Below are positions 8,701-64,000 of a stretch of DNA of 64,000 bases, piece after piece. The stretch comes from Azolla caroliniana (taxonomy: Eukaryota; Plantae; Polypodiophyta): assembly GCA_043228905.1 (NCBI GenBank), contig JBHGNT010000014.1, positions 15,562,001 through 15,626,000 on the forward strand, read 5' to 3'. Both the position numbers and the translations under genes were made by a program. The notes under the pieces were generated by a model, which did not search any database, was not told where the DNA came from, and saw only the letters and a list, made by a program, of their open reading frames with translations. Position 1 is the first letter of the stretch, and each line of letters starts with the position of its first letter.

Positions 8701-11700
8701 TGTTGTTGCCATAACCGAGCAGCCTAGTGTTTCTTTGTGGCATGGCCGGTTGGGACAGAGGTGTCTCATGCTGCATTACCCCATGGTTTTTGGGCAGAGG
8801 CTGTTATGACAGCTGTTCACTTGATTAATCAGTCACCTAACAGGTCTTTGGGAGGGGGAATACCCCAAGAAGCGTGGTCGGGCAAGCCATCTTCATATGC
8901 TCACTTGAGAGTGTTTAGTTGTGAGGCTTTTGTGCACATTCGTAAAGAACAACGCAACAAACTTGAGCCAAAGTCCTGCAAATGTATTTTCCTAGGATAC
9001 GGTGACGAGGGTGAAATGGGGTATAGATTGTGGGATCCCGAGAAAAGAAAAATAGTACGCAGCAATGATGTTATCTTCCGGGAAAATCGCATGCATAAAC
9101 AACCCGAAAAGACTGAGGAAGTACGTAGGGTTGTATTCCGAGAAGAAATACCTTTTAGACAGGAAAATGTGCCTGCTGTACAGCAGCAAACACCTGCTGT
9201 AAAATTACCTGCAAATGCAGAAAATGAGGTTGGAAATGATCAGCCAGTCTTTGCCAATAATGATGAGCCACCAAATGTGCAGGAACAGCTAGAACAGCAA
9301 GCTGTGAATGCTGATTTGCAGGCTGAAATGCCTGGACTGCAAATTGAAAATGATGATTTGCAGGCTCAACAGCTACCAAACAATGAGCATTGGGTTAGGA
9401 GATCGTCTACAGTTACTAGACAGCCTGACAGATTTGTTCCTGATGCAAACAATGTGGCTGATTATGTCATGGTAACTGATTGTGGCGAACCGACTTGCTT
9501 CAAGGAAGCAATGGACAGACAGGACAATAAGAAATGGTATAACGCCATGTTGTCAGAGATGGAATCTCTTGAGAAAAATGATACTTGGGATTTGGTGCAA
9601 TTGCCTAAAGGGCAGAAAACACTTCCATGCAAATGGGTTTATAAAATGAAGGTCATTTCTGATTCCTCGCCAAAGTACAAAGCAAGATTGGTTGCAAAAG
9701 GATACAAGCAGGAATATGGAGTTGATTTTGATGAGATCTTCTCGTCTGTGGTCAAGATGACTACATTAAGAATCATTTTGGGCTTAGTTGCAGCTGAAGA
9801 TATGGAGCTCATACAGATGGATGTGAAGACCGCCTTTTTACATGGCGATCTGCATGAAGACATATATATGCAGCAGCCTGAAGGTTTTGTCACTAAAGGC
9901 AAAGAGAAGATGGTTTGTAAGCTCAAAAGGAGTTTGTATGGGTTGAAACAAGCACCAAGAGAATGGTATCATAAATTTGATGCATTTATGCAGTCTCAAG
10001 GTTTTCGTAGAAGTCAAGTGGACCTTTGCTTGTACACCAAGAAGGCAGGAGATGGCAGACTGATTATCTTGGTTTTGTATGTTGATGATATGTTGATTGC
10101 TGGCAAGGATGTTCATGCCTTGAATTCATTGAAGCAAAGCCTTCATGGCAGCTTTATATGAAGGATCTTGGTGATGCAAATCACATCCTTGGCATGCGAA
10201 TACTCCGAAACCGATCGAAAGGGGTACTCTTTCTATCTCAGCAGGAGTATATCTCTAAGGTTTTGCAGCGTTTCAATATGGAAGGGGGGGAAACAATTGG
10301 GGTTCCATTGCCTCCATATTTGAAACTCAGTGCAGAAGACAGCCCTACATCTGATGATGAGAAGGCTGAAATGGCTAAGGTTCCATATGCTTCTGCCGTT
10401 GGCAGTTTGATATATGCGATGGTTGCTACTCGCCCTAATATTGCCTTTGCAGTGGGAGTGGTTAGTAGGTATATGGCAAATCCCGGCAAAAAGCATTGGG
10501 AAGCGGTGAAAGGTATTATGAGATACCTCAAAGACACAAAGGACTTGTGTATTTGCTTTGGAAAGCAAAAGGCATCTGTCGTTGGTTTTACGGATGCGGA
10601 CTATGCTGGTCACGCAGACTGCAAGAAGTCTACTTCTGGGTATGTGTTTACTTTCACAGGAGGAGCGGTCTCTTGGATCTCCAGACTACAGAAGTGTGTT
10701 GCATTGTCTACTACAGAGGCAGAGTATATTGCTGCCACTGAGGCATGCAAAGAGGCTTTATGGCTTTCATATCTAGTGAGAGATCTTGGCATTACAGAGT
10801 TACCTATTCTTCATTGTGACAGCCAAAGTGCTATCATGCTAGCTCGAAATCCCATCTTTCATGCAAAGATGAAGCACATAGAGGTGAAGTATCACTTCAT
10901 CAGAGATGTACTTGACAACAAGAACATTGAACTTGTCAAAGTACATACAAATAATAATCCTGCAGATCTTCTCACGAAGGGTCTTCCAACTAAGCGATTT
11001 GCTCATTGCCGACAGATGATGGGAGTTGGATAGATGTATGTATGTAGTTCAGCTTTGTACATACTTGGACTTAGCTGACTTTTTTTTTGTTTTTTTTTCT
11101 TCTCACGGCACATTGCCTTTAGGTGGGAGGTTGTTGGGAATAAAGGGCCATTGTGCCTTTTATTAGTGCACGAGTGTGAACGCACTCGTAGCACACTTTT
11201 GAGTTGTATATACATAATATCTAAAAACCAAAAAAGAGGTACACTCTTTTGTACCCAAGACAGCGTGCATCTCTCTCTCTCACTCAGACTCTCTCCCTCT
11301 CTGTTTTTGACCTAAACCCTAATCCTCGTGCTGCCTTCAGGCCTTATATGTACAAAAGCCTCGCAGCCAAAAACACATAAGTGATCGTATGAAGCAGGTT
11401 TGCCATACCAAACCTCTTTAGGGATGTCACCCTTTCAAGACGTGTGAGGGGATCTATTGCATACATGTACTGCAGTTTTCAGTGCCTCTCCTCAAAAGCC
11501 ATGAGGGAGATTAGCAATGGACAGCATGCATCTCACTCTCTCACAAAGCGTCCTGTTATATCGTTCAGCCACACCATTAGAAGAGGGGCTGTATGGAACA
11601 GTAAGCTCCCTCTAATACCAATAATTTCACAAAATTTCTTGAATTCAGCACTTGTATATTCACCACCATTGTCTGTACGCAAACATTTCAGTTTTTTGCC

Positions 11701-14700
11701 TGTTTGAGTGGTCACAAATGCATAAAAACGCTTAAATGCAGCTAAGGCTTCATCCTTAGATTTAAGCAATTGAACCCAAATTTTTCTAGAGAAATCATCA
11801 ACAAATGAGATAAAATACATTGCACCCCCCATAGATTTGGTGGGCATGCTACACACATCAGAATGAACAAGATCAAGTACACAAGACTTACGAGACACAC
11901 CAGAGTAAAAGGAACGCTTCACTTGCTTTCCATATTGGCATTCATTACAAAAATCTAGCTTCGTGCCTTTAGCATCAAGCTTCTTTAGATTACAAAGCCT
12001 AGTGAGACCCTTTTGGCTCATATGGCCAAGTCTCTTATGCCACAACTCCATATGGGAGTGAACTTCAGCCAAAGCAATAAATTTGCCCGATATAGCATTT
12101 CCATGTAAGCAATAAAGTGTTCCCTTTTTTGTGCCTTTCACAATCAGCCTTGAACCTTTTGTCATTTTCCATGATCCTCTCTCAAAGAGAATGTTATAAC
12201 CATGCATATCCATTTGCCCCACAGAAAGCAAGCTCTTCTTGATCCTTTGTACATAATGCACATTATGCAAAACCAGCTCATTAGTGCCATCTGTAGAAAA
12301 ACGCACAGTGCCAATACCCTCAATGGCCATGGCTGCCTGAAGTAAAAGTAAGAAAACACTCCTTGATAGGAGTCACACGAAATGAAGCACCAGAGTCAAC
12401 TATCCATGTTTGGGCTAATGCATCATTGACAATCAGCAAAGCATCAATAAGATCATTCTTAGTGATGCACATGTCCTCTGAAGGAATATTTAGAGAGGCA
12501 TCATATGCATAAGTATCATCTGCTGAAAAACTAGCACATAAAATGTCCTCAACATCTGACAACTCCTCTATGACTACATTAGAGGCCAAATTGGCCTTCT
12601 CTTCGTCCTTTTGGCTATCATGTGCATTAGTCTTGTCCTTTCTCTTATCTCCAGAATTCCTTTTTCTTTCAAGTTCTGCTTTGTAATAGCGGCAATCAAG
12701 TTTCTTGTGGCCTTTCCAGCCACACTGATAGCATGTTACATCATTGCTTTTAACTTTGCTACTATTTCCCCTTTCTTGGCTTTTACTTATGTTCCTATGT
12801 GCATAGTTACTTCTTTTATTTGTCCTACCTCTAACCATGTTGGTTGAGTTGCCACCTTCTCCACTTGCTTTTCTCCTGATCTCTTCATTGAGTATGGAGC
12901 CCCTAACACCATCAAAGGTCAAGTTGGGGCTATTAGATAATGGGACTACCAATGTCTCCCATGAGTCGGGTAGTGTCATTAACAGGAAAATGTCTTTGAG
13001 CTTATCATCAAAAGGAGTCATTCCTGAGCCTTGCAGCTGTGATAAGGTACCTGTAAATAAGGACAAGTGTTCAGTTGCACTCTTGGACTCATCCAATTGC
13101 ATGCCAACAAGCTTTCGCATTAGGTGTACTTGATTAACAAGTGTACTGTTTTCATATGTAGCCTTCAGCTTTGCCCATATTTTAGAAGCAAATTCCAACC
13201 CTTTGAGATCTACCAAGATCTCATCAGAAACAGCCATCTTGATATATATGACAGCCTTTTTGTTTAAAATCTACCATGCATCTTCTAACATGTTCTCTGG
13301 TTTTTCTGCCTCCAACGCACTCTCACAATCCTTCAAAAAAAGAATTCCTTGCATTCTTTCTTTCCACAAGTCAAAACCTGTTCCCTCAAATCGCCGAATC
13401 TCAAAAAGATTCTTCACTTCTGAGGAGGATGACGCCATAGCTCACAATAAAGAGGTTTGAACACCTGTTCTTTGCTGTACAGCAATTGTGCAGAAGTTCA
13501 GAAACCATCGCTCTGATACCAGTTGTAAGGGTTAGGACTGATGTCAATAGGGCTAAGGAATGCTCAGGATTCACCCTAGTATAGGTCCTTTAGATGCAAT
13601 AGTGGAGCTATGGTAGAAAAGATAGAGACAGAGAGAGAGAGCAATAGTTGGAGGAGCTCACCTTTTAGAAGTGAGATCCAAAAGTTTTTAACTTATGTTT
13701 TATATGGCCCATTTAGGGTTTGCCAAGTTCACACTGAACTTGGCCCAAAAATAACAAAAAGGCGATGAGTGACTTTTGGCCTTTATAAATAGGCCTATAT
13801 ATATGTATACACTATAAGGGGGTCATTTAGGGCCTTTACCCCAACATGGTGTGCATCCTTGTTTTTACTCTAATTGTGCTAGCCACAGTCTCTGAGAAAC
13901 CATTGGAAACCGCACTTTTCCTAGCACAGATTCATGCAGTGCATAGATTCCCCATTGCATATCTATAAGGATACCAAGGGCTTCTAGACATTGCATAAGC
14001 CAAGCATGTGGCACAGTGTCAAAGGCTTTTCAAACTTAAACAAAGCAGCAATAAATCCCCTTATTATGAGCTCTGCCATCGTCGTTAAGGGCTTGGGGGT
14101 TTAATATGTGATCTAGGTTGTGAACCTTTTCGGGAAGCCTGCATGTCTAGCTGAACTGCAGCCATGACTCTAGGATCGAGCCGTGTAGTTTAACCAAGTA
14201 ATGGCCAATCATGATTGTCCTGTAGTTGTTTGGCATCATGGGGTCTCCAACCCTTGAGGATTGGCACAATGATATGTTCTGCCCATCTGGTAGCGAAAAA
14301 TTTACACATAGCTAGCTCTATTAAAGATGTGTGCTAGCAATGGGAACAAGATGTCCTGATAAAGTGTTCACCTACCAATCCATCATGATCTTGGGTCTTC
14401 TGAAAATGTACCCAATCAATGACATTTCTTACATTTTGGGAAGTGAAAAGGTGGATACACTTTCTCTTCAAATTTAGGTTAATGGATATTTCCCAAGGAA
14501 TGGTGTATGACAATTGACCTTCAATGATTTTAATTACAAATACTAGTCTACCTTGATAGAGTTTTAAAAAATAAGTTTGAATAGAATTGAACAAACTTAG
14601 CTTGCAAAGGTTACCTCATTTCCAGAAATGGGAACATCATGATCTTTTGCTTTTGTTGTTGGAGTCAAAATATTTTCACTCAATCTTTGATTCTTTACGA

Positions 14701-18369: not shown

Positions 18370-18900
18370 GGTACCATGGTAAAGGCACAGAATGTATTCG
18401 ATAAGCTTCTAGTCATTAATCACATGGTATGTCCAATATGGTTCTGGCGATGAAGCTTTGAAATGCTTGGGTAGATACAAGATGAGGGCATTCACCCCAA
18501 CTCTATCACTTTCATTTTTGTTGCCAAAGCTTGTGCAAGCATACAATCTCTTGAAAACGGTGAAATGATTCATGACGAGATAGGCAAGTGGGGATTACTG
18601 GCAAAACTTGATGTTGTGCTTGGCACTGCATTAGTGGACATGTATGCCAAATGCGGGGCTCTTATAAAAGCACAAGAAGTGTTTGACAAAACTTTTGGAA
18701 CGGAATGTTATCACTTGGAATGCCCTTGTGGCTGGATATGCACAACATGATCTCGGTCATGAAGTCTTGAAACATTTTGATAAGATGCAAAGTGATGGCA
18801 TCTCTCTGAATGCGGTCACATTAATTTGTATATTTGAAAGCTTGTGGAAGCATAGGGTTTGCAGATACTACAAATGGGAGAACAGATGCATGCCAAGCCG
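18370..18900 (+). pseudogene. PLS-class PPR gene fragment
   Basis: VVLGTALVDMYAKCGALIKAQEVFD / RNVITWNALVAGYAQH; frameshifts and stops; truncated by the LINE. Confidence 0.85.
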
Positions 18901-18929
18901 AAAAGAAGAAGGAAGTAAAGAAGGAGTGT

Positions 18930-19070
18930 ACTTACTAGTAACTACTTGGTATGGTATGCCGTCGGGACTCAGTAGAAGGCGTGCAGGCTGCAGCTCAACA
19001 ATCGTAGGAGGTGCTATAAGAGGCGATCGTTGCTCCACAGAAGCCGTTGCCGTTCCATGTGCAGGCTCAA

Positions 19071-19124
<54 letters not shown>

Positions 19125-22100
19125 GAGGGGATATTAGAAACACACGAGTCGAAGGATTTCGTTGGGAGTCGGCTTTTAGACAAACCTCACGTCGATGCAC
19201 TACCAGGGAATCTGGAGGTGTCGCAATATTGTTTCGGAGAGAGCTACATAATAGGATAGAAATACTGAGCACAGACCCAGAAGCTCGTTTTATGTGGGTG
19301 AAAGTCTCCACAAGCAAGGACAAGGCAGTAATTTTCGCCATTTGTTACTTCCCCCCCAAAGGCTCTCGTTATAATCTGGCTGGCGAGGTGAGATTAGTTG
19401 ATGACGGAGTGCCACATGGGCCTTCCCCATATGAACCTCTATCGGATGACATAATCCGATATTCTTCCCAGGGCGAAGTATTCCTTGTAGGAGACTTTAA
19501 TGCGAGAACCCAATCCCGACAATGCACAATATTTCAAATGAATAGAAACCTAGAAATGGTAAATGTCGATCCTTCAGACATAGACACCACACGTAGATCA
19601 AAGGATCAAGGTGCAGACGCTACGAGCTTTGGCCATCATTTGCTCGAACTCGGTAGTCAGCACCAGATGGTCATATATAATTAATGGTTTAGCCAAGTGG
19701 CCAGGTTCGGAAGAGCTCACATGTTTCCCACATGGAGGAGGGGAAAGCACAATCGATTATCTAATAGGACGCCCTGAAGCTACCCACATGATTAACTCAT
19801 TCCGAGTGGCCCCATGTCCTATTAGCGCGGACCATAGTTTCTTATACTTCGAGATAAAATGCGATATCTCTAACGTCACCAACTCTAGTCAACCACGCCA
19901 TGACATCACAATACATTTCACACATGAGCTCTCTGACATATATGCTCGACATGTTCAAGCCCATCTCTCCTCCCTTGATCCCTCCCTACCTTTAGAGAGC
20001 CTTAGTACGAAACTCACACACATCCTTCATTCTGCAGTAGTTAGCAGTTTCCCATACACGAAACACTCCAATCAAGGTAAAGTAGGATCTATGCCACAAA
20101 ATAGATGGTATGATGAGGATTGTAGGTGCTTACATCGACAACTTACAATATCGCAACTCAGTGGTAGTATTACCTTAGTACAAGCTCGTAAAGAAATGCG
20201 CAAGATGACATGTCGTAAGAGACGAGCATGGGAGGCATCCCAATATTGGGAACTCTACCACATGCTCATGAGTAGCGATTGTGCCACTGCATGGAAGAGA
20301 TTACGGGAACCAAGACCACAAACACCCATCGAAGATCCCGAAACTTGGCACACTTATACAGAGAGACTTTACCACATCCCAAACCAACCACCCATTCCAA
20401 TGCCTTCTACACCCCGACCTACTGTGGGGACACTCTTCACGACCTCTAGGGTCACGAAGGTCATAAAGAAATTACAACATAGGAAGTCCATGGACCACAC
20501 AGGATTGCGAGCAGAACACATCATATACGCGAGAGAGTGCCTAGCTCCCTTGCTAACTCTAATCTTCAATCGTGCCCTCGCAGAGGGTTTTCCATCACAA
20601 TGGACCATGAACACAGTGGCCCCCATACATAAAGGGGGGGACCCCATGGACCCAAATACTTATAGGACCATTATGATAGGTCATACCCTTGCTAAATTAT
20701 ATGGTGCAGTAATGGAGGCAGAGCTTAGCGAGTATATGGAGACCTTAAATCTTCGTGCACCTGAATAAGCTAGCTTTAGACGAGCCTTCTCCACTATTGA
20801 CCATATCTTCACACTTAGATGCTTAATTGACCAGACTAAGGCTCGCAAGAAGAAACTATATTGTTGTTTTGTGGACTTCCGCAAAGCCTTTGACACGGTC
20901 CCTAGAGAGCGGTTGTTTGATAGGCTTTAGTGCTTGAGGATATCAGATGACATGGTTTGGGCCATCTACGCACTATATGAACAAGTGTCCGGGTGTGTTC
21001 GATGCCCAGGCGGCATATCCGATAGTTTCACTAGCACTATTGGTGTAAAACAAGGTTGCCCCTTATCTCCGACTCTTTTTGGGATCTACATTGATGAGAT
21101 CACAGATTTTATTGCTCGTAAGGGAGGCAATGGAGTAGTCCTTGGGGATACGCAGGTGCGTATCTTGCTCTATGCAGACAACATAGTTTTGCTCTCTGAA
21201 TCTGAACACGACCTACAAAGGCACCTTAATGCCTTAGATGACTTTTGCACACAACGAGGATTGGTAGTGAATCTAGGGAAAACTAAAGTCCTTATCTTCC
21301 ACACGTCGGCCCAAGTTAGAGCTAAGTGTCACCTAACTATCTCCCATAGCCCAGTTGAGGTGGTTGGATCATATGTCTATCTCGGAGTCACTTTCAGTGC
21401 CCGCTCAGGTAAATTTTCGATGACACAAGCAACGAAGGATAGACTTACAAGAGGACATGCATCCCTCTCACTCCTCGAGAGACAATGCCACCAAGCATAC
21501 TTCCAAGAGCCACGAACTAAAGGGTGGCTCTTTGACTCATTAGTGACTCCCTCTCTCATGTATGCATAAGCGGTTTGGGCCCCAGGACTACCATCTTTCA
21601 TGTGGAAGCAATTAGAGAGACCATTGGTGATGATGTTATCACGCCAACTCTGAAGCAAATCGTCGGTCCCACATGACATTATTAGGGTTGAGTTCACTCT
21701 ACCCCCTATGTTAGTAGAAGCACTTTTTCAACTGGTAGTCTTTATACACAGGATACATAACCAACCACTTGATAGAATATCCCACCAAGCCTTTAAGGCT
21801 TCTCGAGCACTGTATGAGTCCGGCTATACTAGCTCATGGTATGGCATGATGGTGAGTTGGCTTCTTGCCAACGGTCTAGACATTACTAACCTCCCCCCCT
21901 TTAAGTACGACCACACGACTGATAACACTTTAATCTCTCATGAGGACCGTAATAAAGTAATACGCCAAGAAATATGGCAAATTTATACTCGGTATAAATG
22001 GATCACCCCACTAGAGCCACTCCCATCTAAAATGTCGTACTATAAGGAACACTTTATGCACTTCTCTGAGTTAGGTTTTATCACGTGCCCAAAATATCTA

Positions 22101-51729: not shown

Positions 51730-54700
51730 CCCGACCCGACTCACGCCCTTATGCACAAAAAACGCAGGAAAGGGGAAACACCCGACACCAACAGAGACGT
51801 GGATATACACAGATAGACGCAAACGTATATATATAAACATATAGAGGAAGAATACATTCCCGGCTTCGAGCCGGCTGAGGTAGGTTACAGTAGTCGTTTG
51901 CTGCCAAGCCGTCGTCGGGGAGCTCACGGGCTCGTCGCGCCGAGCGGGGTCTTGCACAGGAGATGAGCTGAAGCAAACCCTAAGCGAACACGAAGGGGAA
52001 GAAGAAGAAGAAGAAACCTAACTCTAAACCTAACGGTATACCCTCTAATGAAAAAATGGGCAACCATTTCCCAAAGGGTGTTCCCTTCCTTTTATAGTAC
52101 AAGGAGAGGGATGCGTTACAATGTGGGACAAATCCCGCCTTACATGGGATCGTTTGCCCCGACTTGACTATTCTTCAGCGCCATAAAGGCGCCCTCGATA
52201 TTCACACTAAGTGTACATGGGTGCGTACACACGCTGCACCCCACCGATGTAGCCAATGTTTCCCGGTTTCCGCCTCTGGCTGAAATTCTTCACGACATCC
52301 GCCCCCACCTAACTGCACGTCCAGCAGTACGTGCCAAATCTGGTTGAAGGGTGAGAGATTTCGGCCGGCGAGAAACCGGTCTTCCGTGATCCGCATCCCG
52401 GCTCGCTGCCGGTTTGATCTGTCGGCTTCAAGTCTTCCCTCGCGCTCACCTCCCTGTAGGCTCGTTCGACCCGTCGATGGGTCCTCTGCCGCGATCTCCG
52501 TAGTACGCGTACTTCCGTTGGCCCCTTGTTGGGCCGTATGAACGCCCCGCTTCCCGCCGTATGCCCGATGTCCTCCATTTGAGGAACGCCCGTAGCGGCC
52601 CGCTTGGCCTCATTTGATAATTCGCGTCGTCCCGATTGCCGTCCCATGTCGTTTCGCGTTGCCCTCATCCTTTCTCCGCCACCTTCCTTCTCCATGGTCT
52701 TACATCGCCACGTCGGCCCGAACCGCCATGGTCTCGGGAACGGTGTGGAGGATCCCTGTCCGGCCTTCTCCGCGATACCTCCAAACCGCGCAACCGATCT
52801 CCGCGCTCGCCTTTCCGCTCCGGCACCTCCGTGTGCCACATACCCTCGTCCGTTGTTTGGCACCGCTTGTGCTGTACTCCGGTTCATTACACGCCTCGTC
52901 GGCCCCTTTCCCGGCCAGATCGTGCATCGCCGCTCACCCGCATACCAGTGTCCTTTGCGTCCGAGGAACACCCCTTAGTAGCCCGCTTGGCCCTTCCCGT
53001 CTTCGTGCTGCCGCGATAGGTCCTGAGTCTTCCGCTTGCTGTCATCCCCTCACCCCCACCAGCTCGTCATCCCGGCTTGCCGTGTCAGTCTTCGCTACTT
53101 CGACGGAGCTACCGAGATCTACGAAGCGAGTGTGGAGGATCCTCCTCCGGCCTCTCTTGCCATCCCCTGACTCCGACCCTGTGCAGTTCACTAGGCACTT
53201 GTCACCTCGTTCCCGGCACCTCCCTTGTGCCGTCTTCTGCTTCCTTCGTTCGGCCCCGCCCGCGCCGAACACCGTCCCGTAGTCACGCTCCGATCCGGCC
53301 CGCGATGGCCACTTGCGAGACTCTTGTTCTGTCCCAGGTGTGCCTTTCCGGCCTGACACACCTCCCCGTGTTTGCCCCTACCGGCTCCTTCCGAAACCTC
53401 GTGTTGTTGGGTCCCGTTCCCTGCTGCCACTGTCCTTCTCCCTCAGTCTCACGTTGCCACGTTGGCCGAACTGCCGGGGTCTTCGGATCGGTGTGAGGGT
53501 CCCATAGGACCGGACTCCGTGTCTATGCTGGCTGTAATTCAGGTGTCTTTTGTTTGAGTCCCTCCCGGACTCTCCTCGTGTCTTCCGCGTAGTCGGGTCC
53601 CGTTTCCCGCCGCCACCTTCCTTCTCCCTCGGTCTTACGTTGCCACGTTGGCCGAACAGCCGGGGTCTCCGGTTAAGTGTGGGGATCCCGTAGGACCGAA
53701 CTTCCTTACGCCCATTGCCTTCGTCACCTCGCCGCCACCATCAGTATCTTGGTCTTACGTCGACCGCGTTGCCGACTGCCGAAGTCTCTAGAACCGGTGT
53801 GAAGGATCCTCCGTAGGCCGCCGATCCGTAGCCCTTGCCTTCGTCACCTCGCCGCCACCGTCAGTATCTTGGTCTTACGTCGACCGCGTTGCCGACTGCC
53901 GAAGTCTCTAGAACCGGTGTGAAGGATCCTCCGTAGACCGCTCGTCCGTAGCCCCGACCCTGTCCCGAGTCGTCCTTTTCCGCATGTAAAAGAGGGCGGC
54001 TCGTCCCGCACCCTCTCCCGTATCGGCACCTCTATGCCGAATACGGCCTCGATCGAACGATCCACGACCGGATCACGCTCCATCCGTATCGGAATGACGA
54101 TCTCCTCGTGCTGCTTCTGTCCTTGGCCTCCTCGCAGGCCGTTTCCCATCCATCTTCGCTGGCATCGTGCCAGGACTCCTCGGTACCGCCATCCATCTCC
54201 TCGGTCTTACATGGGCATACGGGCCCGAATGCCGAGTTCTCCGGAATCGGGTCCGCGGGCTTTTGTCCATTCCTTCCCCGCATCGTCTCGCCGGTGATTC
54301 TTGCCCTTTCGCCGCCACCTTCCTCCGCTTGGGACTCACGTGGGCACTCGGGCCCGATTGCCATTGTCTCGGGAGCAAGTGTGGGAAGACACAAAGAATC
54401 GCACGTCCGTTTTGCGCCCATGTCCGTAGCCACCGACTCTTCGTGGTCGGCATTCGTCTTCTTACCGATCGCGCAAGCCCCGTCTGGGCTTGCTTCTCCA
54501 ATGACCGGGATCTCGGTCTGACACGCCCGAAACCGCTGGTCCCTACGTTCCGGTTCCGCGATATGTATCTCGGCCTCGTCCTTGGCCGTTCTATCTCCGC
54601 AAGTCGAGAGGGCGTTTCGTTCCGCACCTCTCCCGTGGTACCGTGGTACCGATCTTCCGCCGTCGTGTGGGGCAAGTCCGTCTTCTCGGTCTTTCGTCTT

Positions 54701-56254
54701 CCTCGAGCATCGCCTCGAGAGCTGCGTACGCCTCCGCAATCCTCGCCCCAACGCTGATCCTTGCCAACTCTCTTTGCCGTTCGGCCTCTTCCCGCTGTGA
54801 TGGCACGCCGTCGCGTACCTTCCTCTTAGCCTTCTCGGCTCGCTCGTTGTCCAGCCCTTGGCACACCCTTCCGACCTTCGACCAGTCCTCCGTAAGCCCA
54901 TTCGCACCGTCATCGTCTTCAAGCTCAATCCCAATGGCTTCCCGTTCCGTTCGGTCGATTGACCTGACGAACAAAAGGACTTTGTCTGCCCCCACCAAAC
55001 CTTGTTCCCGCTCCGGAGCCGAGCAAGCCGTCGCTCGAACTCTCGGAACGCCTTGGTCGCGCCCCGGTGGGTCTTTGCCGATGCTACCCACTGGTCGAAG
55101 TCGTGCCGTCCCCGGCTCTTCCGCCGTCCTCCGTATGCCTTCAGGAGCGCCTCTTCGAAGGCCTCCCACGAACTATGAGCCTCACGGAGCTCCTTTACTT
55201 CCTCATGCATCCGGACAGCTATGACCTGGCAGAAGAACTCGTCTACGCCACGCTCCTCCATTTCCGCGTTGTAGGCTTCCAAGTAAGATGGGACTTTGTC
55301 CCCGTTGAAACGACCGACTCTTTCGACCACTCGCTCAACCGCTTGTTGCGTTGCTTCTCAACTCATCACCACTCGTGCCGACTCCAACACCACTTCGGCC
55401 ACCATCTCCGCAAGTTCATCGTCTTCCGACTCCATCCTCCCTTGCCGCCTTTCACGTCGGGTTCACCAAAGATGTCGCATTGTTACGCGCGTGCGTGGAG
55501 AAAGGCGGGACAACGGGGGTCTTGGACTAGGGAGCGACGGAGCGTAGGAAGTCGCACTTCACCGTTTCCGGGGCATCCCAAAAGCACACCCAAAGCATCC
55601 GAAGAGAGGGAGAGAGAGAGAGAGCGTGCTTAACACCGACTCACGCACACACACGCACACACACACACGCACACACGCACACACAACCCGACCCAACTCA
55701 CGCCCTTATGCACAGAAAACGCAGGAAAGGGGAAACACCCGACACCAACAGAGACGTGGATATACACAGACAGACGCAAACGTATATATATAAACATATA
55801 GAGGAAGAATACATTCCCGGCTTCGAGCCGGTTGAGGTAGGTTACAGTAGTTGTCTGCTGCCAAGCCGCCGTCGGGGAGCTCACGGGCTCGTCGCGCCGA
55901 GCGGGGTCTTGCACAGGAGATGAGCTGAAGCAAACCCTAAGCGAACACGAAGGGGAAGAAGAAGAAGAAGAAACCTAACTCTAAACCTAACGGTATACCC
56001 TCTAATAAAAAAATGGGCAACCATTTCCCAAAGGGTGTTCCCTTCCTTTTATAGTACAAGGAGAGGGATGCGTTACAATGTGGGACAAATCCCGCCTTAC
56101 ATGGGATCGTTTGCCCCGACTTGACTATTCTTCAGCGCCATAAAGGCGCCCTCGATATTCACACTAAGTGTACATGGGTGTGTACACACGCTGCACCCCG
56201 CCGATGTAGCCAATGTTTCCCGGTTTCCGCCTCTGGCTGAAATTCTTCACGACA
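51514..56254 (-). mobile_element. Non-autonomous Gypsy-derived LTR element (TR-GAG/LARD-like); LTRs 55473-56254 and 51514-52297, TSD ACGT, tRNA-Trp PBS
   Basis: ~783-bp LTR pair; TSD 51510-51513/56255-56258; frameshifted gag N-terminus (VGRFNGDKVPSYLEAYNAEM...GLTEDW); no RT/RH/INT recognised; GC-rich interior. Confidence 0.9.
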
Positions 56255-57508
56255 ACGTGACACCACTAGAAAAAGAGCTTTGGTCCTTCAGTTTAGGGAC
56301 TCAGATTTTCTTAAAAGAGACCAATTCTTCGAGGATTGGGCGGGGACCCCATCTACCTCAATGAAGACCTGATCAAGATGCAAATTGAGCATCGTAAAAC
56401 TTGTATGTCGCGAGTCATACAAGTTCGTAAAGAGGGGAATCATGCTTTTTACCGAGACGGACGTGGGATAATAAATTATCACACCACCAATTGATGGTGT
56501 GTGGCCCATGTGACAGACAATAAACTTAGGATGACTTTATGGAAATGTAATGGTGCACTTTGGACACACCTTGGCCGTCTAGAGGAGATTTTGAAGGTAT
56601 CTGACATACTTTTTTTAATAGAAACACATCAGAGTCCAAATCGAAGACTATCACGAGTTGATGGTTTTCGTTGGGAATCTGTCTTTAGACAAACCTCACG
56701 TCGACACACTACTAGAGGATTTGGAGGGGTTGCTATACTATTTCAGAGAGAGATACATAATAGGATAGAAATACTAAAGATAGACCCAGAAGCCTGTTTT
56801 ATGTGGGTGAAAGTCCTCACTAGCAAGGATCATGCGATATTTATTGTTGTTTGTTACTTCCCCCCGAAAGGATCCCGGTATAATATGGTTGTAGAGGCGA
56901 GTATAGTTGATGAAGGAACACCACATGGGCCTTCTCCATACGAATCTTTATCGGGTGACATAATCCGATATTCTTGTCAAGGGGAAGTCTTCCTTGTAGG
57001 AGATTTCAATGCCAGAACCCAATCCTGACAATGCACAATATTTCAGATGGATAGAAACCTGGAAATGGTGAATGTCGACCCTTTAGCCTTAGACATAACA
57101 CGTACATCAAAGGATCAAGGTGTGGACGCCATAAGCTTTGGCCATCATCTGCTTGAATTTGGAAGCTGGGTGAAAGCATGCGAGTGGAAACAATTAGCTA
57201 TGTCCTTGACATAGCTAATTAGCTATGCAAAAAGCTACCATTGATAAATAGTCATTTTAGTAAAAAGCCATCATTAATAAATTAAGTATGCAAAAAACTA
57301 CCATTGAAAATACTAGAGTGTTTTAATTACATATGTAAATGAGTGCCATAAATGTGCAACATAAATTGATGTGTGCACCATAAATTATATATCGAATTCC
57401 TAGGTCCATTATGCATGATCCTTTGCCACATCACGTAGGCCATCTCTAGTTGAGTACTGTGGGTTAGTTGCTACCACTGTTGCTAAACCCTATCGAGTCC
57501 ACCTGCCG

Positions 57509-58380
57509 CCACTCTACACTGAGGGGCTGCTACTGTGCGTTCCAAGCATCATCAAAGAGCTGCTCAATCTGACGGGGTTCTCTTCTCTGTGACACTCTAC
57601 ACTCAGGGGCCACTATTGTGCATTCCAAGCATCATCAAAGAGCTGTTCAATCTGAGGGGGTTCTCTTCTCTGTGCCACTCTACACTCAGGGGCCATTACT
57701 GTGCGTTCCAAGCATCATCAAAGAGCTGTTCAATCTGAGGGGGTTCTCTTCTCTGTGCCACTCTACACTCAGGGGCCATTACTGTGCGTTCCAAGCATCA
57801 TCAAAGAGCTGTTCAATCTGAGGGGGTTCTCTTATCTGTGCCACTCTACACTCAGGGGCCGCTGCTGTGCGTTCCAAGCATCATCAAAGAGTTGTTCAAT
57901 CTGACGGGGTTCTCTTCTCTTTGCCACTCTACACTCAGGGGTTGCTACTGTGCGTTCCAAGCATAATCGAAGAGCTATTCAATCTGACGGGGTTCTCTTC
58001 TCTTTTCCACTCTCACTCAGGGGCCGCTACTGTGCGTTTCAAGCATCATTGGTAACTGTTCAATCTGACGGGGTTCTCTTCTCTTTTCCACTCTCACTCA
58101 GGGGCCGCTACTGTGCGTTTCAAGCATCATTGGTAACTGTTCAATCTGACGGGGTTCTCTTCTCTATGCCACTCTATTCTCAAGTGCCTTCTATGTGCGT
58201 TTCAAGCATCATCGGTAACTGTTCAATCTGACGGGGTTCTCTCCTCCATTGCCATCATTCTATACTCAGTTGCCACTACTGTCCAGTCCCGGATTGCTTC
58301 CACATTTCGATTTGACGGAGTTCACTCATCCAACGGCAACATTCTACACTCAGTTGTTGCCATTGGTCGGTCTTGGATCG
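57509..58380 (+). repeat. 83-bp (then ~80-bp) tandem satellite, ~9-10 copies, decaying rightwards
   Basis: CCACTCTACACTCAGGGGCC...TTCCAAGCATCATCAAAGAGCTGTTCAATCTGA(C/G)GGGGTTCTCTTCTCT; ORF-track starts recur every 83 bp. Confidence 0.95.
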
Positions 58381-58577
58381 CCTCCTCAACTGTTGGATCC
58401 AACAGAGTGAAATCCTCTACTGTTCGGTCTTGGATTGCAATAACTTTTCTGTCTATTGATTATCTTGTGTATTGTTGTGTCTAATCTTGTGTATTGTGTG
58501 GAATATTTTTGTGTATTGTTGTTGCCCATAGCCATCTTTAATACTTGTTTTTTTTTCTGGAAATTTAGGGTTTTAAC

Positions 58578-61500
58578 ATGTCTAGCCAAATGGAAGGGGA
58601 AGAAGGGTGTTTAGAATTACCCCTCAATGATCATAAGGATAGGGATGATGTTATCAGGACACAACAAGCCATACGAAACTATTGGGCAGATAAAAAAAGG
58701 AAACATCGTCAATTGTTGAAGGATACGAAAGCCACACTCAGTAAAGGTAAGGATAGTTTAGATGAGAATGTAAGTAATGCGACTACCATCATAGAGAGAA
58801 AGGTTGTAGACTATTTCAATGTTCAAACCAAGCACATCAGCAATGAAGAAAAGAAGGTAGTACTTTATGGAATATGTAATGATCCATCGATAAAGGACTT
58901 AGTTGATTGTGATGGTCTTAATGCAAACATATCATCTATTTTAGTAAATAATCTTCGTAATAGTTTCGTATCCATGAGCAGGTCAGAAGATGATCTTGTC
59001 TTAAAAAGGTCTAGTCTAATGATGTTACTTAATAGTGATGTTGACGATATAAACATTAGTGAGCTATCTAAGGTAATTGGTGTTAGTAGAAAAACAGTGT
59101 ACAATACAATGAACCGTATAATTTCCTCGGGTGAAGGAACTAGTCTACTAAAGCTAACTACAAGATGTAAGCCAATGACACCCATAACATTTGAAATCAA
59201 GGATGTAATCACAATGTTTTGGACTAATGAGAGTAGGGTTTCACCCAATAAAAAGGATTTATGCAGGAAACGTGTTGGAAGAAATCAATACGAGGAGCAT
59301 CCCATTCATCTTCTTGATGTACCTCAGGTATTTACATTTATCTCAACATTTGTTTTGACTCTACTCGGAAAGTTAATTAGCTCAGTTAGCAGAAAAGCTA
59401 ATTAGCTTATCAGTTACATTTACCTCAGTTAGCTACTAGGATCGCTACTACATAGGTAACTAGCTACTCTCAATAGTTACAACCAGGATAGCTAATTAGC
59501 TATTCTCAATAGCTAATTTAGGTACTACCAGATAATTAGCTGTACTGCTAGCTAGTTAGCTATCATGGTAGCTAGTTAGCTATTTCGTTATTACCAGCTA
59601 ATTAGCTACTAGGAAAGCTAATTAGCTACCATGATAGCTAATTAGCTACTATGATAGCTACTACATAGGTAACTGGCTACTCTCAATGGCTACTACCATG
59701 ATAGCTAATTAGTTAGGATAGCTAATTAGCCACCATTATAGCTAATTAGCTACTAGACTAGCTAATTAGCTACCACGATAGCTAATTAGCTACTAGACCA
59801 GCTAATTAGCTACCATGATAGCTAATTAGTTACTAGGAAAGCTAATTAGCCACCATGATAGCTAATTAGCTAGTAGACAAGCTAATTAGCTACCATGATA
59901 GCTAATTAGCTACTAGGACAACTAATTAGCTACTAGGACAGCTAATTAGCTACTAGACTAGCTAATTAGCTACCACGATAGCTAATTAGCTACTAGACCA
60001 GCTAATTAGCTACCATGATAGCTAATTAGTTACTAGGAAAGCTAATTAGCCACCATGATAGCTAATTAGCTAGTAGACAAGCTAATTAGCCACCATGATA
60101 GCTAATTAGCTACTAGGACAACTAATTAGCTACTAGGATAGCTAATTAGCTACTAGAATAGCTAATTAGCTACTAGAATAGCTAATTAGCTACTAGAATA
60201 GCTAATTAGCTACCATGATAGCTAATTAGCTACTACGACAGCTAATTAGCTACCATGATAGCTAATTAGCTACTAGAATAGCTAATTAGCTACTAGAATA
60301 GCTAATTAGCTACCATGATAGCTAATTAGCTACTACGACAGCTAATTAGCTACCATGATAGCTAATTAGCTACTAGAATAGCTAATTAGCTACCATGATA
60401 GCTAATTAGCTACTAGAATAGCTAATTAGCTACCATGATAGCTAATTAGCTACTACGACAGCTAATTAGCTACCATGATAGCTAATTAGCTACTAGGACA
60501 ACCAATTAGCTACTAGGACAGCTAATTAGCTACCATGATAGCTAATTAGCTACTACGACAGCTAATTAGCTACCATGATAGCTAATTAGCTACTAGAATA
60601 GCTAATTAGCTACCATGATAGCTAATTAGCTACTACGACAGCTAATTAACTACCATGATAGCTAATTAGCTACTAGGACAACTAATTAGCTACCATGATA
60701 GCTAATTAGCTACTAGAATAGCTAACTAGTTACTAGAATAGCTAACTAGCTACTAGAATAGCTAATTAGCTACTAGGATAGTTAGCTAGTTACGAGAATA
60801 ACTAATTCCCCTTTATTACGCAGGTCGATTTATTTATTAGGTTCAAACGAATGCATCCAACTATCAAAGTTCAACTACGAACATTCGAGTCTCTTAAGCC
60901 ACACTTTGTGAGACGCTTAAAGGATCGATACACATGTTGTTGCATTTACCATGTACAGATGGGTTTTCTGAAGGACTCTGTTAATCTACTACGTCACCAT
61001 AGCGCATCCCTAACTAATACAGTTTGCACATGTGGGTGCCAAATCTGTCGATCAAGCCCGCAAGAGGAGTGTAAATCATCTGAGCACGTTATCTCTTCCA
61101 TGAGTTATTTATTAGATTCAATATTGTGTCCGAGAGAATCTGACGCTATCTTCCATATTCATAAATGTGTCATGGGTTTATGTCAAGATTGTGGCCCTAC
61201 TAGATTTAGGTGGTGTCCAAATGAATTGAGTAGTGAAATATTGATCTCTGTGAAGTTATTTGAGTCAGTGAACACCAATTTCGAAGGAAAGGTATGTAAA
61301 AGAAAGGATCTAGTTCGGAAGATGCTTAAACCAAGGGATTTGGTGTCTCTGTTTGTAGTATCTCTAGGAAAGTTCATTAAACACAACTTCATTTATTCAT
61401 GGCAGGCCCATCAGTTTAAGACTTGCATATCTGATTTCCCAAATGATGTAGTAGTCTCAGTAGTAGATTTCGCAGAGAATTATACTTTCAAGCAGCAGAA

Positions 61501-62665
61501 TGAAATTCAATCTATGCATTGGTGTTCAGTTCAGGTAACCATTTTTGTGCACATAACATATTTTCGAGTTTCAGGTGATGTTAAAAAAGTAATTCATTTC
61601 TTTATTTCCGATGATAAGAAGCATGATACCTTGTTCGTCCAACACTGTTTTAAGTTACATTGGCAGTGGTTATTAGCTCAACGTTTGGAGCTTACTCAAC
61701 ATTGGGTCTGGTCTGACGGAGCTGCGTCACAATTCAAGGCTCGACGTCCATTTTATTTTGTGGGGAGGTATCCTGCTATAACAGGTTTGGAGATGAGATG
61801 GAATTTTTTTGGGTCTGGCCATGGTAAAGGTGAACATGATGGTGCAGGGGCTGTTATAAAGCGGGCACTTACCCATGAACAACTAAAGACAGATGGTGTG
61901 CACATGAATTGTGCATCACATGTAGTTGAATTTTTAAGAACAAATATGTCGACGAGTGCCACAGGTGTTTATTCCTCGCAAGTTCGAGATATCAAACGTG
62001 AATTTTGGGAAGTGAAGATAGATGAAGTAAATAGGGAGAAGACCTGGGAGTGCCAAGGAATTCCCGAATTGCGATCTCTGCATGCTGTTCGCGGTTATTC
62101 CAGGTTGGATGGTCATTGTATTGCGGTTAGAGAATTGACTTGTTTTTGCTTCCATTGTGTGCAGGGAAATTGGAGATATTGTCTAAACAAAGCATACATT
62201 CAGAATTGGGAGTATCACACTCTGAATGATAAGGAAGCAGTTGATGGAGAAACAGGGCAGAATGCTGACTTCACATATGAGGGACTTGGAGATACTTTGA
62301 GTGATGTCCTGAACGTTGGGGATAACTTCGCTGTAAATGCTGAAGAAGGCAATTCAGAGGGTGCTGATTTCTATATATTAAAGTGCACGGTTAGTAAACA
62401 GTGTGCAAGGCAGAATATTGTAGATGCATGGGGAAATTTTGTATCTGCCGGGACATTCTACATCGAAGGCATTTTTTATGCAAAACTAGATGACTACGAA
62501 TATGTGTACAGGCTGTTAGAAGACAAACCAGCAGCGTATATGTACTCTCATTTGGTCAGATGCATCAACGTCCCAATGTCAGAATACAATAGCTGCCCCG
62601 GTTTATACACTGTTGGTGCTAATGTGTATGAATGTATTTACAATAGTATGCCATGGAATTTGTAG
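58578..62665 (+). CDS. Spliced transposase, join(58578..59327,60824..62665), 863 aa
   Basis: Donor CAG|GTATTT at 59327, branch ACTAAT at 60801, acceptor CAG| at 60823, phase 0 and in frame (…LDVPQ|VDLFIRFKRMHP…). HTH (ISELSKVIGVSRKTVY), Cys clusters (TCCCIYH, CTCGCQIC, CQDC), catalytic-like VDFAENY / WSDGAASQFK / GHGKGEHDG, C-terminal CFCFHC. Confidence 0.85.
59375..60800. repeat. Intronic minisatellite of 20-bp units: palindrome GCTAATTAGC + 10-bp linker
   Basis: 51 units in exact 20-bp register from 59761 to 60780, with degenerate units on both sides; a 200-bp higher-order repeat at 59741-59940/59941-60140. Confidence 0.97.
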
Positions 62666-63136
62666 CTACAAGTAGCACTTACCATGTTCTCTTGTAAAAC
62701 AAACATGTATTTCGCGAAAACAGATCAATAAATTCGTTTGGAATCAATTTCTTGTATACAGTCTGCTTTCTGTGCTTCTTTCTCAATAAAATCATGTCTT
62801 TTTTGTTAAGTTTTAAGTTATAAGTTATAGCGAAATAGTCATCAGTAGCTAATTAGCTGTACAAATGCAGCTAATTAGCTGTACAAATGTATTTACAATA
62901 GTATGCCATGGAATTTGTAGCTACAAGTAGCACTTACCATGTTCTCTTGTAAAACAAACATGTATTTCGCGAAAACAGATCAATAAATTCGTTTGGAATC
63001 AATTTCTTGTATACAGTCTGCTTTCTGTGCTTCTTTCTCAATAAAATCATGTCTTTTTTGTTAAGTTTTAAGTTATAAGTTATAGCGAAATAGTCATCAG
63101 TAGCTAATTAGCTGTACAAATGCAGCTAATTAGCTG
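62631..63136 (+). repeat. 255-bp direct duplication of the transposase stop codon and 3' UTR
   Basis: AATGTATTTACAATAGTATGCCATGG... starts at 62631 and 62886. Confidence 0.93.
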
Positions 63137-63311
63137 ACCAAATGCAGCTAATTAGCTGTACAAATGTAGCTAATTAGCTGTCAATAGCTAAATAGTCATC
63201 AATAGAATGAAATCAACAATCTGCAACATATTCCTCAAATTACATAGTAGATAAGTACAGTGGGAACAAGTAATTAAATTCTTCATTGAATAATGTCATC
63301 TCTTTACATAT

Positions 63312-64000
63312 TTATAAATTACCATTGGAAATGTCTACAAATCTCCTATAAACAGCTAAGCTCTTGCTAGTCAGTGGAACGAGTCTACATATATTATCCG
63401 CATATTGAGCTCGGTATGGAGTCCACAACCATGCACCTAGTTGGCAGCTCACTGTTTGCACCAGGTACTGTTCAGGCATTTCCTCGGGTAGAATGAGACA
63501 GCATCTCCGAATATTGAAGTAGTGTCGGAAATGTCCTGTATCCAAAATCAATGTATTGTCAGCATTATATTCAGGCCAAGTAGCCCAAAAATCAGAAAGC
63601 CTCTTGAATCTTGCAGCTTCCATCTGCTCACAATTTTCTCGTGCCCATTGACCTTTAAAACGACTTCGCCATTTTGGGAAGAATCTTGCCAAACACTTCC
63701 ACACATCTGATTTTGGTTTCTCACTCCAAATAAACAAATCGAAGTACTCCGCAGCCCACTCTAGAAACTGATTTGCGTCCCTCCTTGGCTGCATATATCT
63801 CACACTCATCAAGACTTTATCCAGCTCCAAGATCAAGGCTCTTCGCTCGACTTCTAGTGGTTTAGGTTTCCATTCCTGAAACTGAGCCGCTGTTACACCA
63901 TTTTCTGGTAGGATACGATCAATCTCAATCAGCTCAGGTTCGGCTGACACAACTGGTGTCCTTTTCCTCTTTAAACCCCTAGTCGACTGTGTTGGGCCTA
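63312..64000 (-). CDS. NIF/FCP1-like HAD-family phosphatase-domain protein, probably catalytically degenerate; N-terminus beyond the window
   Basis: ALILELDKVL (motif I, normally DxDx(T/V)), R..ANQFLEW..EYFDLFIWS, W.RENC, FKRLSDFW, Y..DNTLILD..., N...CLIL. The frame is open to the window edge and includes LKRKR. Confidence 0.7.
   Translation of the reverse strand, partial: GPTQSTRGLKRKRTPVVSAEPELIEIDRILPENGVTAAQFQEWKPKPLEVERRALILELDKVLMSVRYMQPRRDANQFLEWAAEYFDLFIWSEKPKSDVWKCLARFFPKWRSRFKGQWARENCEQMEAARFKRLSDFWATWPEYNADNTLILDTGHFRHYFNIRRCCLILPEEMPEQYLVQTVSCQLGAWLWTPYRAQYADNICRLVPLTSKSLAVYRRFVDISNGNL

Follow-up and report, generated by a model that had tools for sequence, protein, structure and literature searches.

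The transposon En/Spm, of the CACTA type, carries a short motif that is repeated near both of its ends and is bound by TnpA, a protein that the element encodes. Sola2 is, to our knowledge, among the least studied of the cut-and-paste superfamilies, and we know of no member with a biochemical characterisation; the superfamily, made up of DNA transposons of eukaryotes, was reportedly set out by Bao and colleagues in 2009. Arabidopsis has Mutator-like VANDAL elements together with VANC anti-silencing proteins (PMC5735166, PMC10398659), and a connection between TnpA and an ancestral transposase is drawn in the abstract of a 2026 preprint. Here we describe a Sola2-like element in 64,000 nucleotides of DNA from Azolla caroliniana (assembly GCA_043228905.1, contig JBHGNT010000014.1, positions 15,562,001 to 15,626,000 of the forward strand), the whole of which we call the window and whose numbering is used throughout. 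Positions 57168 to 64000 are the left ~6.8 kb of an autonomous DNA transposon of ~11-12 kb, about two-thirds of an apparently intact copy, and hold a transposase gene, part of an accessory gene that faces it, and arrays of a palindrome that also lies near the ends of the family. Taking the evidence together, we think it probable that this is an intact-looking two-gene transposon that uses its end motif as a binding platform.

Like VANDAL elements with their VANC genes, the element has an accessory gene beside the transposase, and its family-specific motifs are tandemly amplified in introns and other non-coding parts and turn over between families; the comparison with VANC is a fair analogy of layout. 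It differs from VANDAL in belonging to another superfamily and in having a palindromic motif, which is also found in or adjoining the terminal inverted repeats (TIRs) and is known here from sequence alone. With En/Spm and TnpA it shares two products and motif repeats near both ends, whereas its arrays lie deep in introns, are far longer and are strictly phased, and its proteins are unrelated. This copy contributes an open, apparently intact left part together with a precisely mapped insertion into a long interspersed nuclear element (LINE), and we observe that in three lineages the motif of the arrays is also the motif of the ends. The features of the window copy are collected in the table.

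Table. Features of the element and its left flank in the window (TSD, target-site duplication; HTH, helix-turn-helix; TRF, Tandem Repeats Finder; ORF, open reading frame)
Feature	Position	Strand	Evidence or remark
Decayed LINE endonuclease (APE) domain, broken by the insertion	56501..57167	+	Pfam Exo_endo_phos 1.2e-6, ORF 56501-57028
AGCT, candidate left copy of a 4-bp TSD	57164..57167	.	Sequence read; right flank beyond the window
Left TIR, GGGTGAAAGCATGCGAGTGGAAAC, 24 bp	57168..57191	+	Same 24-mer heads left- and right-type ends in metagenome contigs
Subterminal motif: half-site AATTAGCTA adjoining the TIR, then 18-bp palindrome CATAGCTAATTAGCTATG (57210-57227)	57192..57227	.	Sequence; kept in left-end contigs
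83-bp x 9 tandem array 5' of the transposase start codon	57508..58246	+	TRF, 91% matches
Transposase exon 1, 250 aa: basic N-terminus, HTH-like segment aa 147-186, conserved RVSPNKKD..R..H..H box	58578..59327	+	
GT..AG intron packed with the palindrome array	59328..60823	+	Exact sites 59396-60771
Transposase exon 2, 613 aa + stop: Cys/His cluster, RNase H-like DDD core	60824..62665	+	
Exon 2, codons of the predicted catalytic Asp residues	61466-61468, 61715-61717, 61838-61840	+	
255-bp tandem duplication, 99% identical, across the transposase stop codon and 3' region	62631..63144	+	TRF
Six further palindrome copies, CAGCTAATTAGCTG type, 22-bp period, between the convergent genes	62847..63179	.	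TRF
Last exon of the accessory gene, NIF/FCP1-like, ELDKV in place of DxDxT	63312..64000	-	Pfam NIF 7.2e-8; exits the window

The element starts at 57168 (GGGTGAAAGC...), immediately 3' of the AGCT, and GGGTGAAAGCATGCGAGTGG occurs only once in the 64-kb window, at 57168. A paralogous LINE at 19143-19656 of the same window aligns (82%) with the interrupted one up to 57165, where the similarity ends at the element, and it runs on from 19657 (AGCACCAGATGG...) beyond the point at which the LINE at 57165 is cut. A second copy of the element, L006, was alignable from exactly the GGG onward, and its flank is unrelated to that of the window. Because the paralogous LINE continues and L006 aligns precisely from the GGG behind a different flank, the left boundary and the insertion into the LINE are demonstrated for the left side, as the earlier note on this DNA had read them (a LINE interrupted by an element beginning with GGG after AGCT); resumption of the LINE would fall beyond base 64000. 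Indeed, every feature listed in that note was found where it had been placed.

The ends of the family were examined by scanning metagenomes with the terminal 20-mer, which gave 20 contigs. With the exception of L013 and L014, these sorted into a left type, resembling the window, and a right type, and both types share the 24-bp TIR GGGTRAAAGCATGCGAGTGGAAAC, in which position 5 is A or G; the flanks differ in every contig. The palindrome TAGCTAATTAGCTA lies within ~60 bp of the end in left-type and right-type contigs. Both ends of one copy were not found in any of the 20 contigs. The last 560-840 bases of the window (63157-64000) are matched by L031 and L033 at 98.6% and 99.2% identity, L032 carries an identical 168-aa exon, and the right end of L031 and L032 is the same TIR 24-mer, supplying the right TIR of the family. 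Judged by the composite of these near-identical contigs, the window copy would end on the right at about 67.9-69.0 kb, counted in window positions. TIR pairs were sought in the moss, liverwort and conifer loci as well as in L028-L030 and turned up at chance level only; the ends of L030 were located by eye. One sequencing run, probably of DNA, covered the whole element at very high depth, which fits a high-copy family; the family is young and high-copy. It is an abundant plant family, probably of ferns, and of the cut-and-paste type.

L014 (2849-2868) and L013 (2812-2870) start with the terminal 20-50 bases of the family, beyond which all similarity is lost; each may have arisen from a family member by deletion or may be a different element that shares the TIR.

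The palindrome is strongly concentrated within the element. Counted over the whole window, AGCTAATTAGCT has 52 exact copies, all at 57213-63179, where 0.01 would be expected; when one mismatch was allowed, 68 sites were found inside the element, 61 of them in the intron, and none in the other 57 kb. In the intron, 51 of 55 sites share one 20-bp phase, kept over 1.2 kb. The distribution asserted in the earlier note, near the left end, through the intron and between the genes, was thus borne out, and the motif proved to be confined to the element. Relatives with 48-51% transposase identity have the same architecture and other motifs. In L001 and L028 the motif is GGTAGCTACC (25 copies, 0 expected), present in both introns and near both TIRs, 58 bp from the left one and ~25 bp from the right one; in L030 it is AGGTGGTACA (9 copies, 0.02 expected), present inside both TIRs and in the transposase intron; and in L002, a contig lacking element ends, a unit containing TAATTA forms an intron array. 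In all three of the lineages whose ends are known, the arrays are built from the terminal or subterminal motif of that same lineage.

That last observation bears on whether the arrays could be neutral minisatellites, that is, a subterminal repeat copied into tolerant non-coding DNA, where slippage or unequal exchange makes it grow and shrink without serving the element. Such an origin is possible, if in our view doubtful. It would agree with the strong variation of array length among near-identical copies, of which L031 has 11 sites and L032 has 39 while the intron of L006 is shorter, with the presence in the element of other tandem duplications that are recent and unrelated to the arrays (83 bp x 9; 255 bp x 2), and with the moss, liverwort and conifer loci, which had neither an enriched palindrome of 10-14 bp nor any comparably long array of a short motif. 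Because none was found in those loci, the arrays are not universal in the lineage. What neutral expansion does not readily accommodate is that the same two introns, of the transposase and of the accessory gene, hold arrays in spite of complete turnover of the motif, that the motif is each time the one from the ends, and that the 20-bp phase is so long maintained.

The two transposase exons join in frame to give a protein of 863 aa; they were searched and modelled separately. The spliced protein of this length proposed in the earlier note was upheld: the exons are in frame, DFAENY, SDG..QFK and GHGKG..D are present, and the D, F, N, K, H, G and Cys columns are invariant. More precisely, the residues of exon 2 that are invariant in 25 aligned homologues are C102, C115, C120, H187, D215, F216, N219, S262, H267, D298, K305, H333, G334, K335, D339 and K346. 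No Pfam family matched exon 2. A word search with it gave 127 matches, including moss, liverwort, ferns, conifers, fish and sea cucumber, and a full profile search gave 26,731 cluster representatives; neither exon 2 nor its profile had a significant match among PDB sequences, and a search of the protein atlas with exon 1 returned nothing usable. In an AlphaFold2 (AF2) model of exon 2, with a predicted local distance difference test score (pLDDT) of 82.7, D215 follows beta1, D298 follows beta4 and D339 starts the next helix. A first pass with Foldseek gave weak matches (best E 8e-4, to NurA), and in a second look with VIA the model matched retroviral integrase cores, Mos1, SETMAR and IstA with Z of 9-11 over residues ~192-391. 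The core of exon 2 is, as modelled, RNase H-like, with three invariant Asp residues, D215, D298 and D339. The helix-turn-helix (HTH) segment that the earlier note had placed in this protein was detectable, but its Pfam match stayed below threshold.

Splicing was seen as a joint 59327->60824 in one X17 contig. It was reported as 59315->60821 with 12 letters between, and these 12 letters are the end of exon 1 with one mismatch. The X17 and X18 contigs cover the exons and not the intron array; both runs come from a related organism and are, by guess, RNA. Gene models of bryophytes run colinear with the transposase through the junction of exons 1 and 2. The 255-bp tandem duplication includes the last 35 bases of the transposase coding sequence, leaves the protein unchanged and is recent.

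Comparison of the window transposase with those of Sola2_DFa-2 and Sola2_PPa-1, both printed in the supplement of Bao and Jurka (2013; PMC3627910), was done by eye. A His lies 28 residues before the first Asp in both the window copy and Sola2_DFa-2, and the blocks correspond in order: VDFAENY and MDFKENI at the first Asp, ISDDKKH and FSDVLNH from S to H, WSDGAASQFK and WSDGAKHFK at the second Asp, and GHGKGEHD and YHGKSDVD at the third. Sola2_PPa-1, like Sola2_DFa-2, shows H-28-DFxEN, SDxxxH, WSDGxxxFK and HGKxxxD. By eye, then, DFxEN, SDGxxxxFK and HGKxxxD and their spacing agree with the two published Sola2 sequences, and the window protein appears to carry the Sola2 signature blocks on its DDD core. 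Short strings taken from published Sola2 proteins were found in none of 272 collected proteins. The two groups are also alike in that the published members have a DDD transposase with DFxEN, (S/C)D(G/N)..FK and HGKxxxD at the same spacing, a transposase length of ~860-890 aa, short TIRs with 5'-G(A/G)G, a large size (10-15 kb) and a second gene. The 5'-GRG termini are present here in the TIR common to both end types and in L001, which has a perfect 22-bp TIR starting with GGG; the published DFa ends read GAG...CTC, with 4-bp TSDs (PMC3627910). In the complete relatives, the TSD candidates are TCCA/TTCA in L001 (3/4; the chance of at least 3/4 is ~0.05) and AAGC/AATT in L030 (2/4). Of the fit to Sola2 claimed in the earlier note, the motifs, their spacing and the 5'-GGG end therefore held, and the 4-bp TSD did not come out clearly.

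From published Sola2, the window element differs in its long phased intron arrays of an end motif and in its land-plant host; published Sola2 has an AT-rich 4-bp TSD, whereas the window copy is seen from its left end alone. The second gene also differs, being Fanzor in the Sola2-Fanzor elements of dictyostelids and here a RING-H2-like plus NIF-like protein. The further idea that Sola2 belongs mainly outside land plants had to be given up: a preprint on the Cupressus genome reports Sola2 as the most abundant class II superfamily in that conifer, and homologues were found in moss, liverwort, ferns and conifers, so that Sola2 in land plants is already known. That the protein should instead be placed in some other superfamily, such as KDZ or CACTA, or be a domesticated host protein, we regard as highly improbable. 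Exon 2 has no Pfam family, the comparison with Sola2 was made by eye, and KDZ proteins, too, have Cys clusters upstream of the core; yet the Pfam Transposase_21/tnp2 and KDZ models gave no match, the motifs and spacings agree with published Sola2, and the TIRs, high copy number and unique flanks show mobility.

The accessory gene is only partly in the window, where 228 aa of a full ORF of 363 aa (P0121) are visible. The convergent NIF ORF of the earlier note was confirmed on the minus strand above the Pfam threshold: with NIF (PF03031), the window ORF scored 32.7 bits against a threshold of 21.8, P0121 scored 31.5 and L001 scored 38.2. Read inwards from the right end, L031 and L032 have the right TIR with two palindromes, an N-domain exon (profile E 2e-23), a RING-H2-like exon, a second palindrome array (11-39 exact sites per contig), the 168-aa exon and the NIF exon. 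The gene is thus a multi-exon one, with a globular N-domain, a RING-H2-like finger, a 168-aa exon and an NIF exon. The finger of L031 reads CIACG..CNHTYHLLC..C..C; Pfam RING models matched 12 of 16 relatives, all below threshold (best 8e-4), and the nearest Atlas shapes were several RING E3 families, all with template modelling (TM) scores below 0.3. Fold searches with the N-terminal part of the accessory protein gave coiled-coil matches and low-TM RING clusters only, and Pfam returned no plant-mobile-domain (PMD) match.

Tim50 is an NIF-fold protein without catalytic activity. With it and with the CTD phosphatases FCP1/SCP/CPL the window ORF shares an NIF domain above threshold (PF03031), and NIF-fold proteins and the accessory ORF are alike in an hhhD motif near the end of the domain (LILDT and LIVDD). 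In contrast to the DxDxT of FCP1/SCP/CPL, the window family has ELDKV and its relatives D(M/I)NGV, and the accessory protein is a transposon product that also includes a RING-like finger. LILELDKVL stands in the window ORF and in P0121, P0123 and P0124, and ELDKV is kept in all members of the window family down to 73% identity; the relatives have LDMNGV in L001 and LDINGV in the Adiantum protein P0285. The catalytic DxDx(T/V) with its nucleophile Asp was absent from the window ORF and from the relatives. Because DxDxT is replaced by ELDKV or D(M/I)NGV, phosphatase activity of the NIF-like domain is unlikely, to judge from what is known of HAD/FCP1 enzymes.

A broken catalytic motif might also be expected of a passive rider, and large DNA transposons frequently capture fragments of host genes, so the NIF ORF could in principle be a product of transduplication. 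The evidence runs strongly the other way, and we consider such a capture very unlikely. In two lineages, L001 at 51% transposase identity and L030 at 48%, the accessory gene is likewise convergent with the transposase and has all of its N-domain, RING and NIF parts; an annotated Adiantum protein unites the N-domain and NIF; and a moss ORF matches the accessory profile at 3e-8. The ORF is open in all copies seen, and it belongs to a single gene of several exons, those for the N-domain and the RING being conserved. Between copies, dN/dS was 0.09-0.51 for NIF and 0.20 for transposase exon 2; both genes are under purifying selection and open within the window. The linkage of NIF ORF and transposase on which the earlier note had relied accordingly extends from near-identical copies to these lineages, and we concluded that the accessory gene is no passenger. 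It evolves faster than the transposase (26% versus 51% identity), and searches of the lineages by tblastn with the NIF and RING ORFs were nearly blind on account of this fast evolution, so that a profile was needed.

We propose that the 12-14-bp palindrome TAGCTAATTAGCTA is the putative subterminal protein-binding site of the family. Because the motif lies at or in the TIRs, a dimer of the transposase HTH would be its simplest reader; we hold the chances of this to be about even, with the accessory protein as the alternative reader. Tandem duplication would then have spread the palindrome into phased arrays in the introns of both genes and in the intergenic spacer, where the arrays would concentrate the element's own protein on the element, for control of transposition or for sustained transcription. 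The layout would also be in keeping with the activation of cognate copies by a transposase that a preprint abstract reports. The RING and dead-phosphatase protein would act as a helper by way of host proteins, rather than as an enzyme on phosphate.

A different division of labour, along the lines of the earlier note, would make the accessory protein a sequence-specific anti-silencing factor resembling VANC, which would attach to the arrays and lift or prevent DNA methylation of its family; this seems to us unlikely. The layout does resemble that of VANDAL and VANC, with short family-specific motifs in tandem in introns and upstream regions (PMC5735166), and the accessory gene is conserved, fast-evolving and under purifying selection. 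The array is also very poor in CpG, with an observed/expected ratio (o/e) of 0.26. On the other hand, Pfam scans covering every accessory ORF returned only RING-like and NIF matches, neither a recognisable DNA-binding domain nor a VANC-type family among them; the HTH sits in the transposase; and, according to the abstract of a 2026 preprint, the AtMu1 transposase alone activates cognate copies in a sequence-specific manner. The broader suggestion that ferns hold, in a different superfamily of transposons, a second and independently evolved system of sequence-specific self-recognition of the VANC kind is likewise improbable, though it can be put concretely: the HTH or the RING/NIF protein would bind the arrays, the family would be kept transcribed or unmethylated, and the RING/NIF protein would trap or ubiquitinate a host silencing factor or a factor of the carboxy-terminal domain (CTD) type of RNA polymerase II (Pol II).

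Against the preferred explanation, an intact-looking two-gene transposon with its end motif as binding platform, several points have to be set. The HTH match is below threshold (Pfam HTH_11, 5.8e-5, 23.3 bits against a cut-off of 25). The splice joint was seen in a single contig at a depth of ~4, from a related organism and a run only guessed to be RNA, and the assignment to Sola2 is an unscored motif match by eye to two published sequences. For the 4-bp TSD, the left AGCT is what is visible of the window copy, and the relatives agree at 3/4 and 2/4. Tandem arrays are capable of neutral expansion, and the moss, liverwort and conifer loci lack them.

Some further features were observed in and around the element. 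Its CpG o/e is 0.26-0.62, lowest in the intron array, against 0.72 for the window, and C>T and G>A make up most of the differences between family copies, a pattern that fits long-term cytosine methylation of the family. The 83-bp array is mostly absent from copy L006, whose matches to the window end at 57537 and restart at 58533; its expansion appears to be copy-specific and may concern the promoter region. In L001 the spacer between the convergent genes (11111-11897) contains unrelated tandem duplications with units of 140, 103, 72 and 73 bp, and the intergenic spacer seems to be generally prone to duplication, as in the window copy. Upstream of the interrupted LINE, window positions 51844-52297 and 55801-56254 are direct 454-bp copies, 98.5% identical and ~4 kb apart, which may be the long terminal repeats (LTRs) of a small retroelement or a segmental repeat. 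A single ORF at 18683-19684 of the window combines N-terminal pentatricopeptide (PPR) repeats (Pfam PPR_2, 6e-8) with a LINE endonuclease domain, probably because a LINE landed in a PPR pseudogene or became joined to one.

All visible coding parts of the window copy are open, its family is young and high-copy, and a spliced joint was seen in one contig of a run guessed to be RNA, so that the copy could realistically be put to a transposition assay. If the arrays and the helper should be neutral baggage, the locus would be an ordinary, well-annotated transposon copy. Large plant genomes may hold transposons with recognition or regulatory systems of their own, similar in kind to VANDAL/VANC and Spm/TnpA yet independently evolved, and the conserved RING and pseudo-phosphatase gene with its lineage-specific arrays offers a concrete, testable case.

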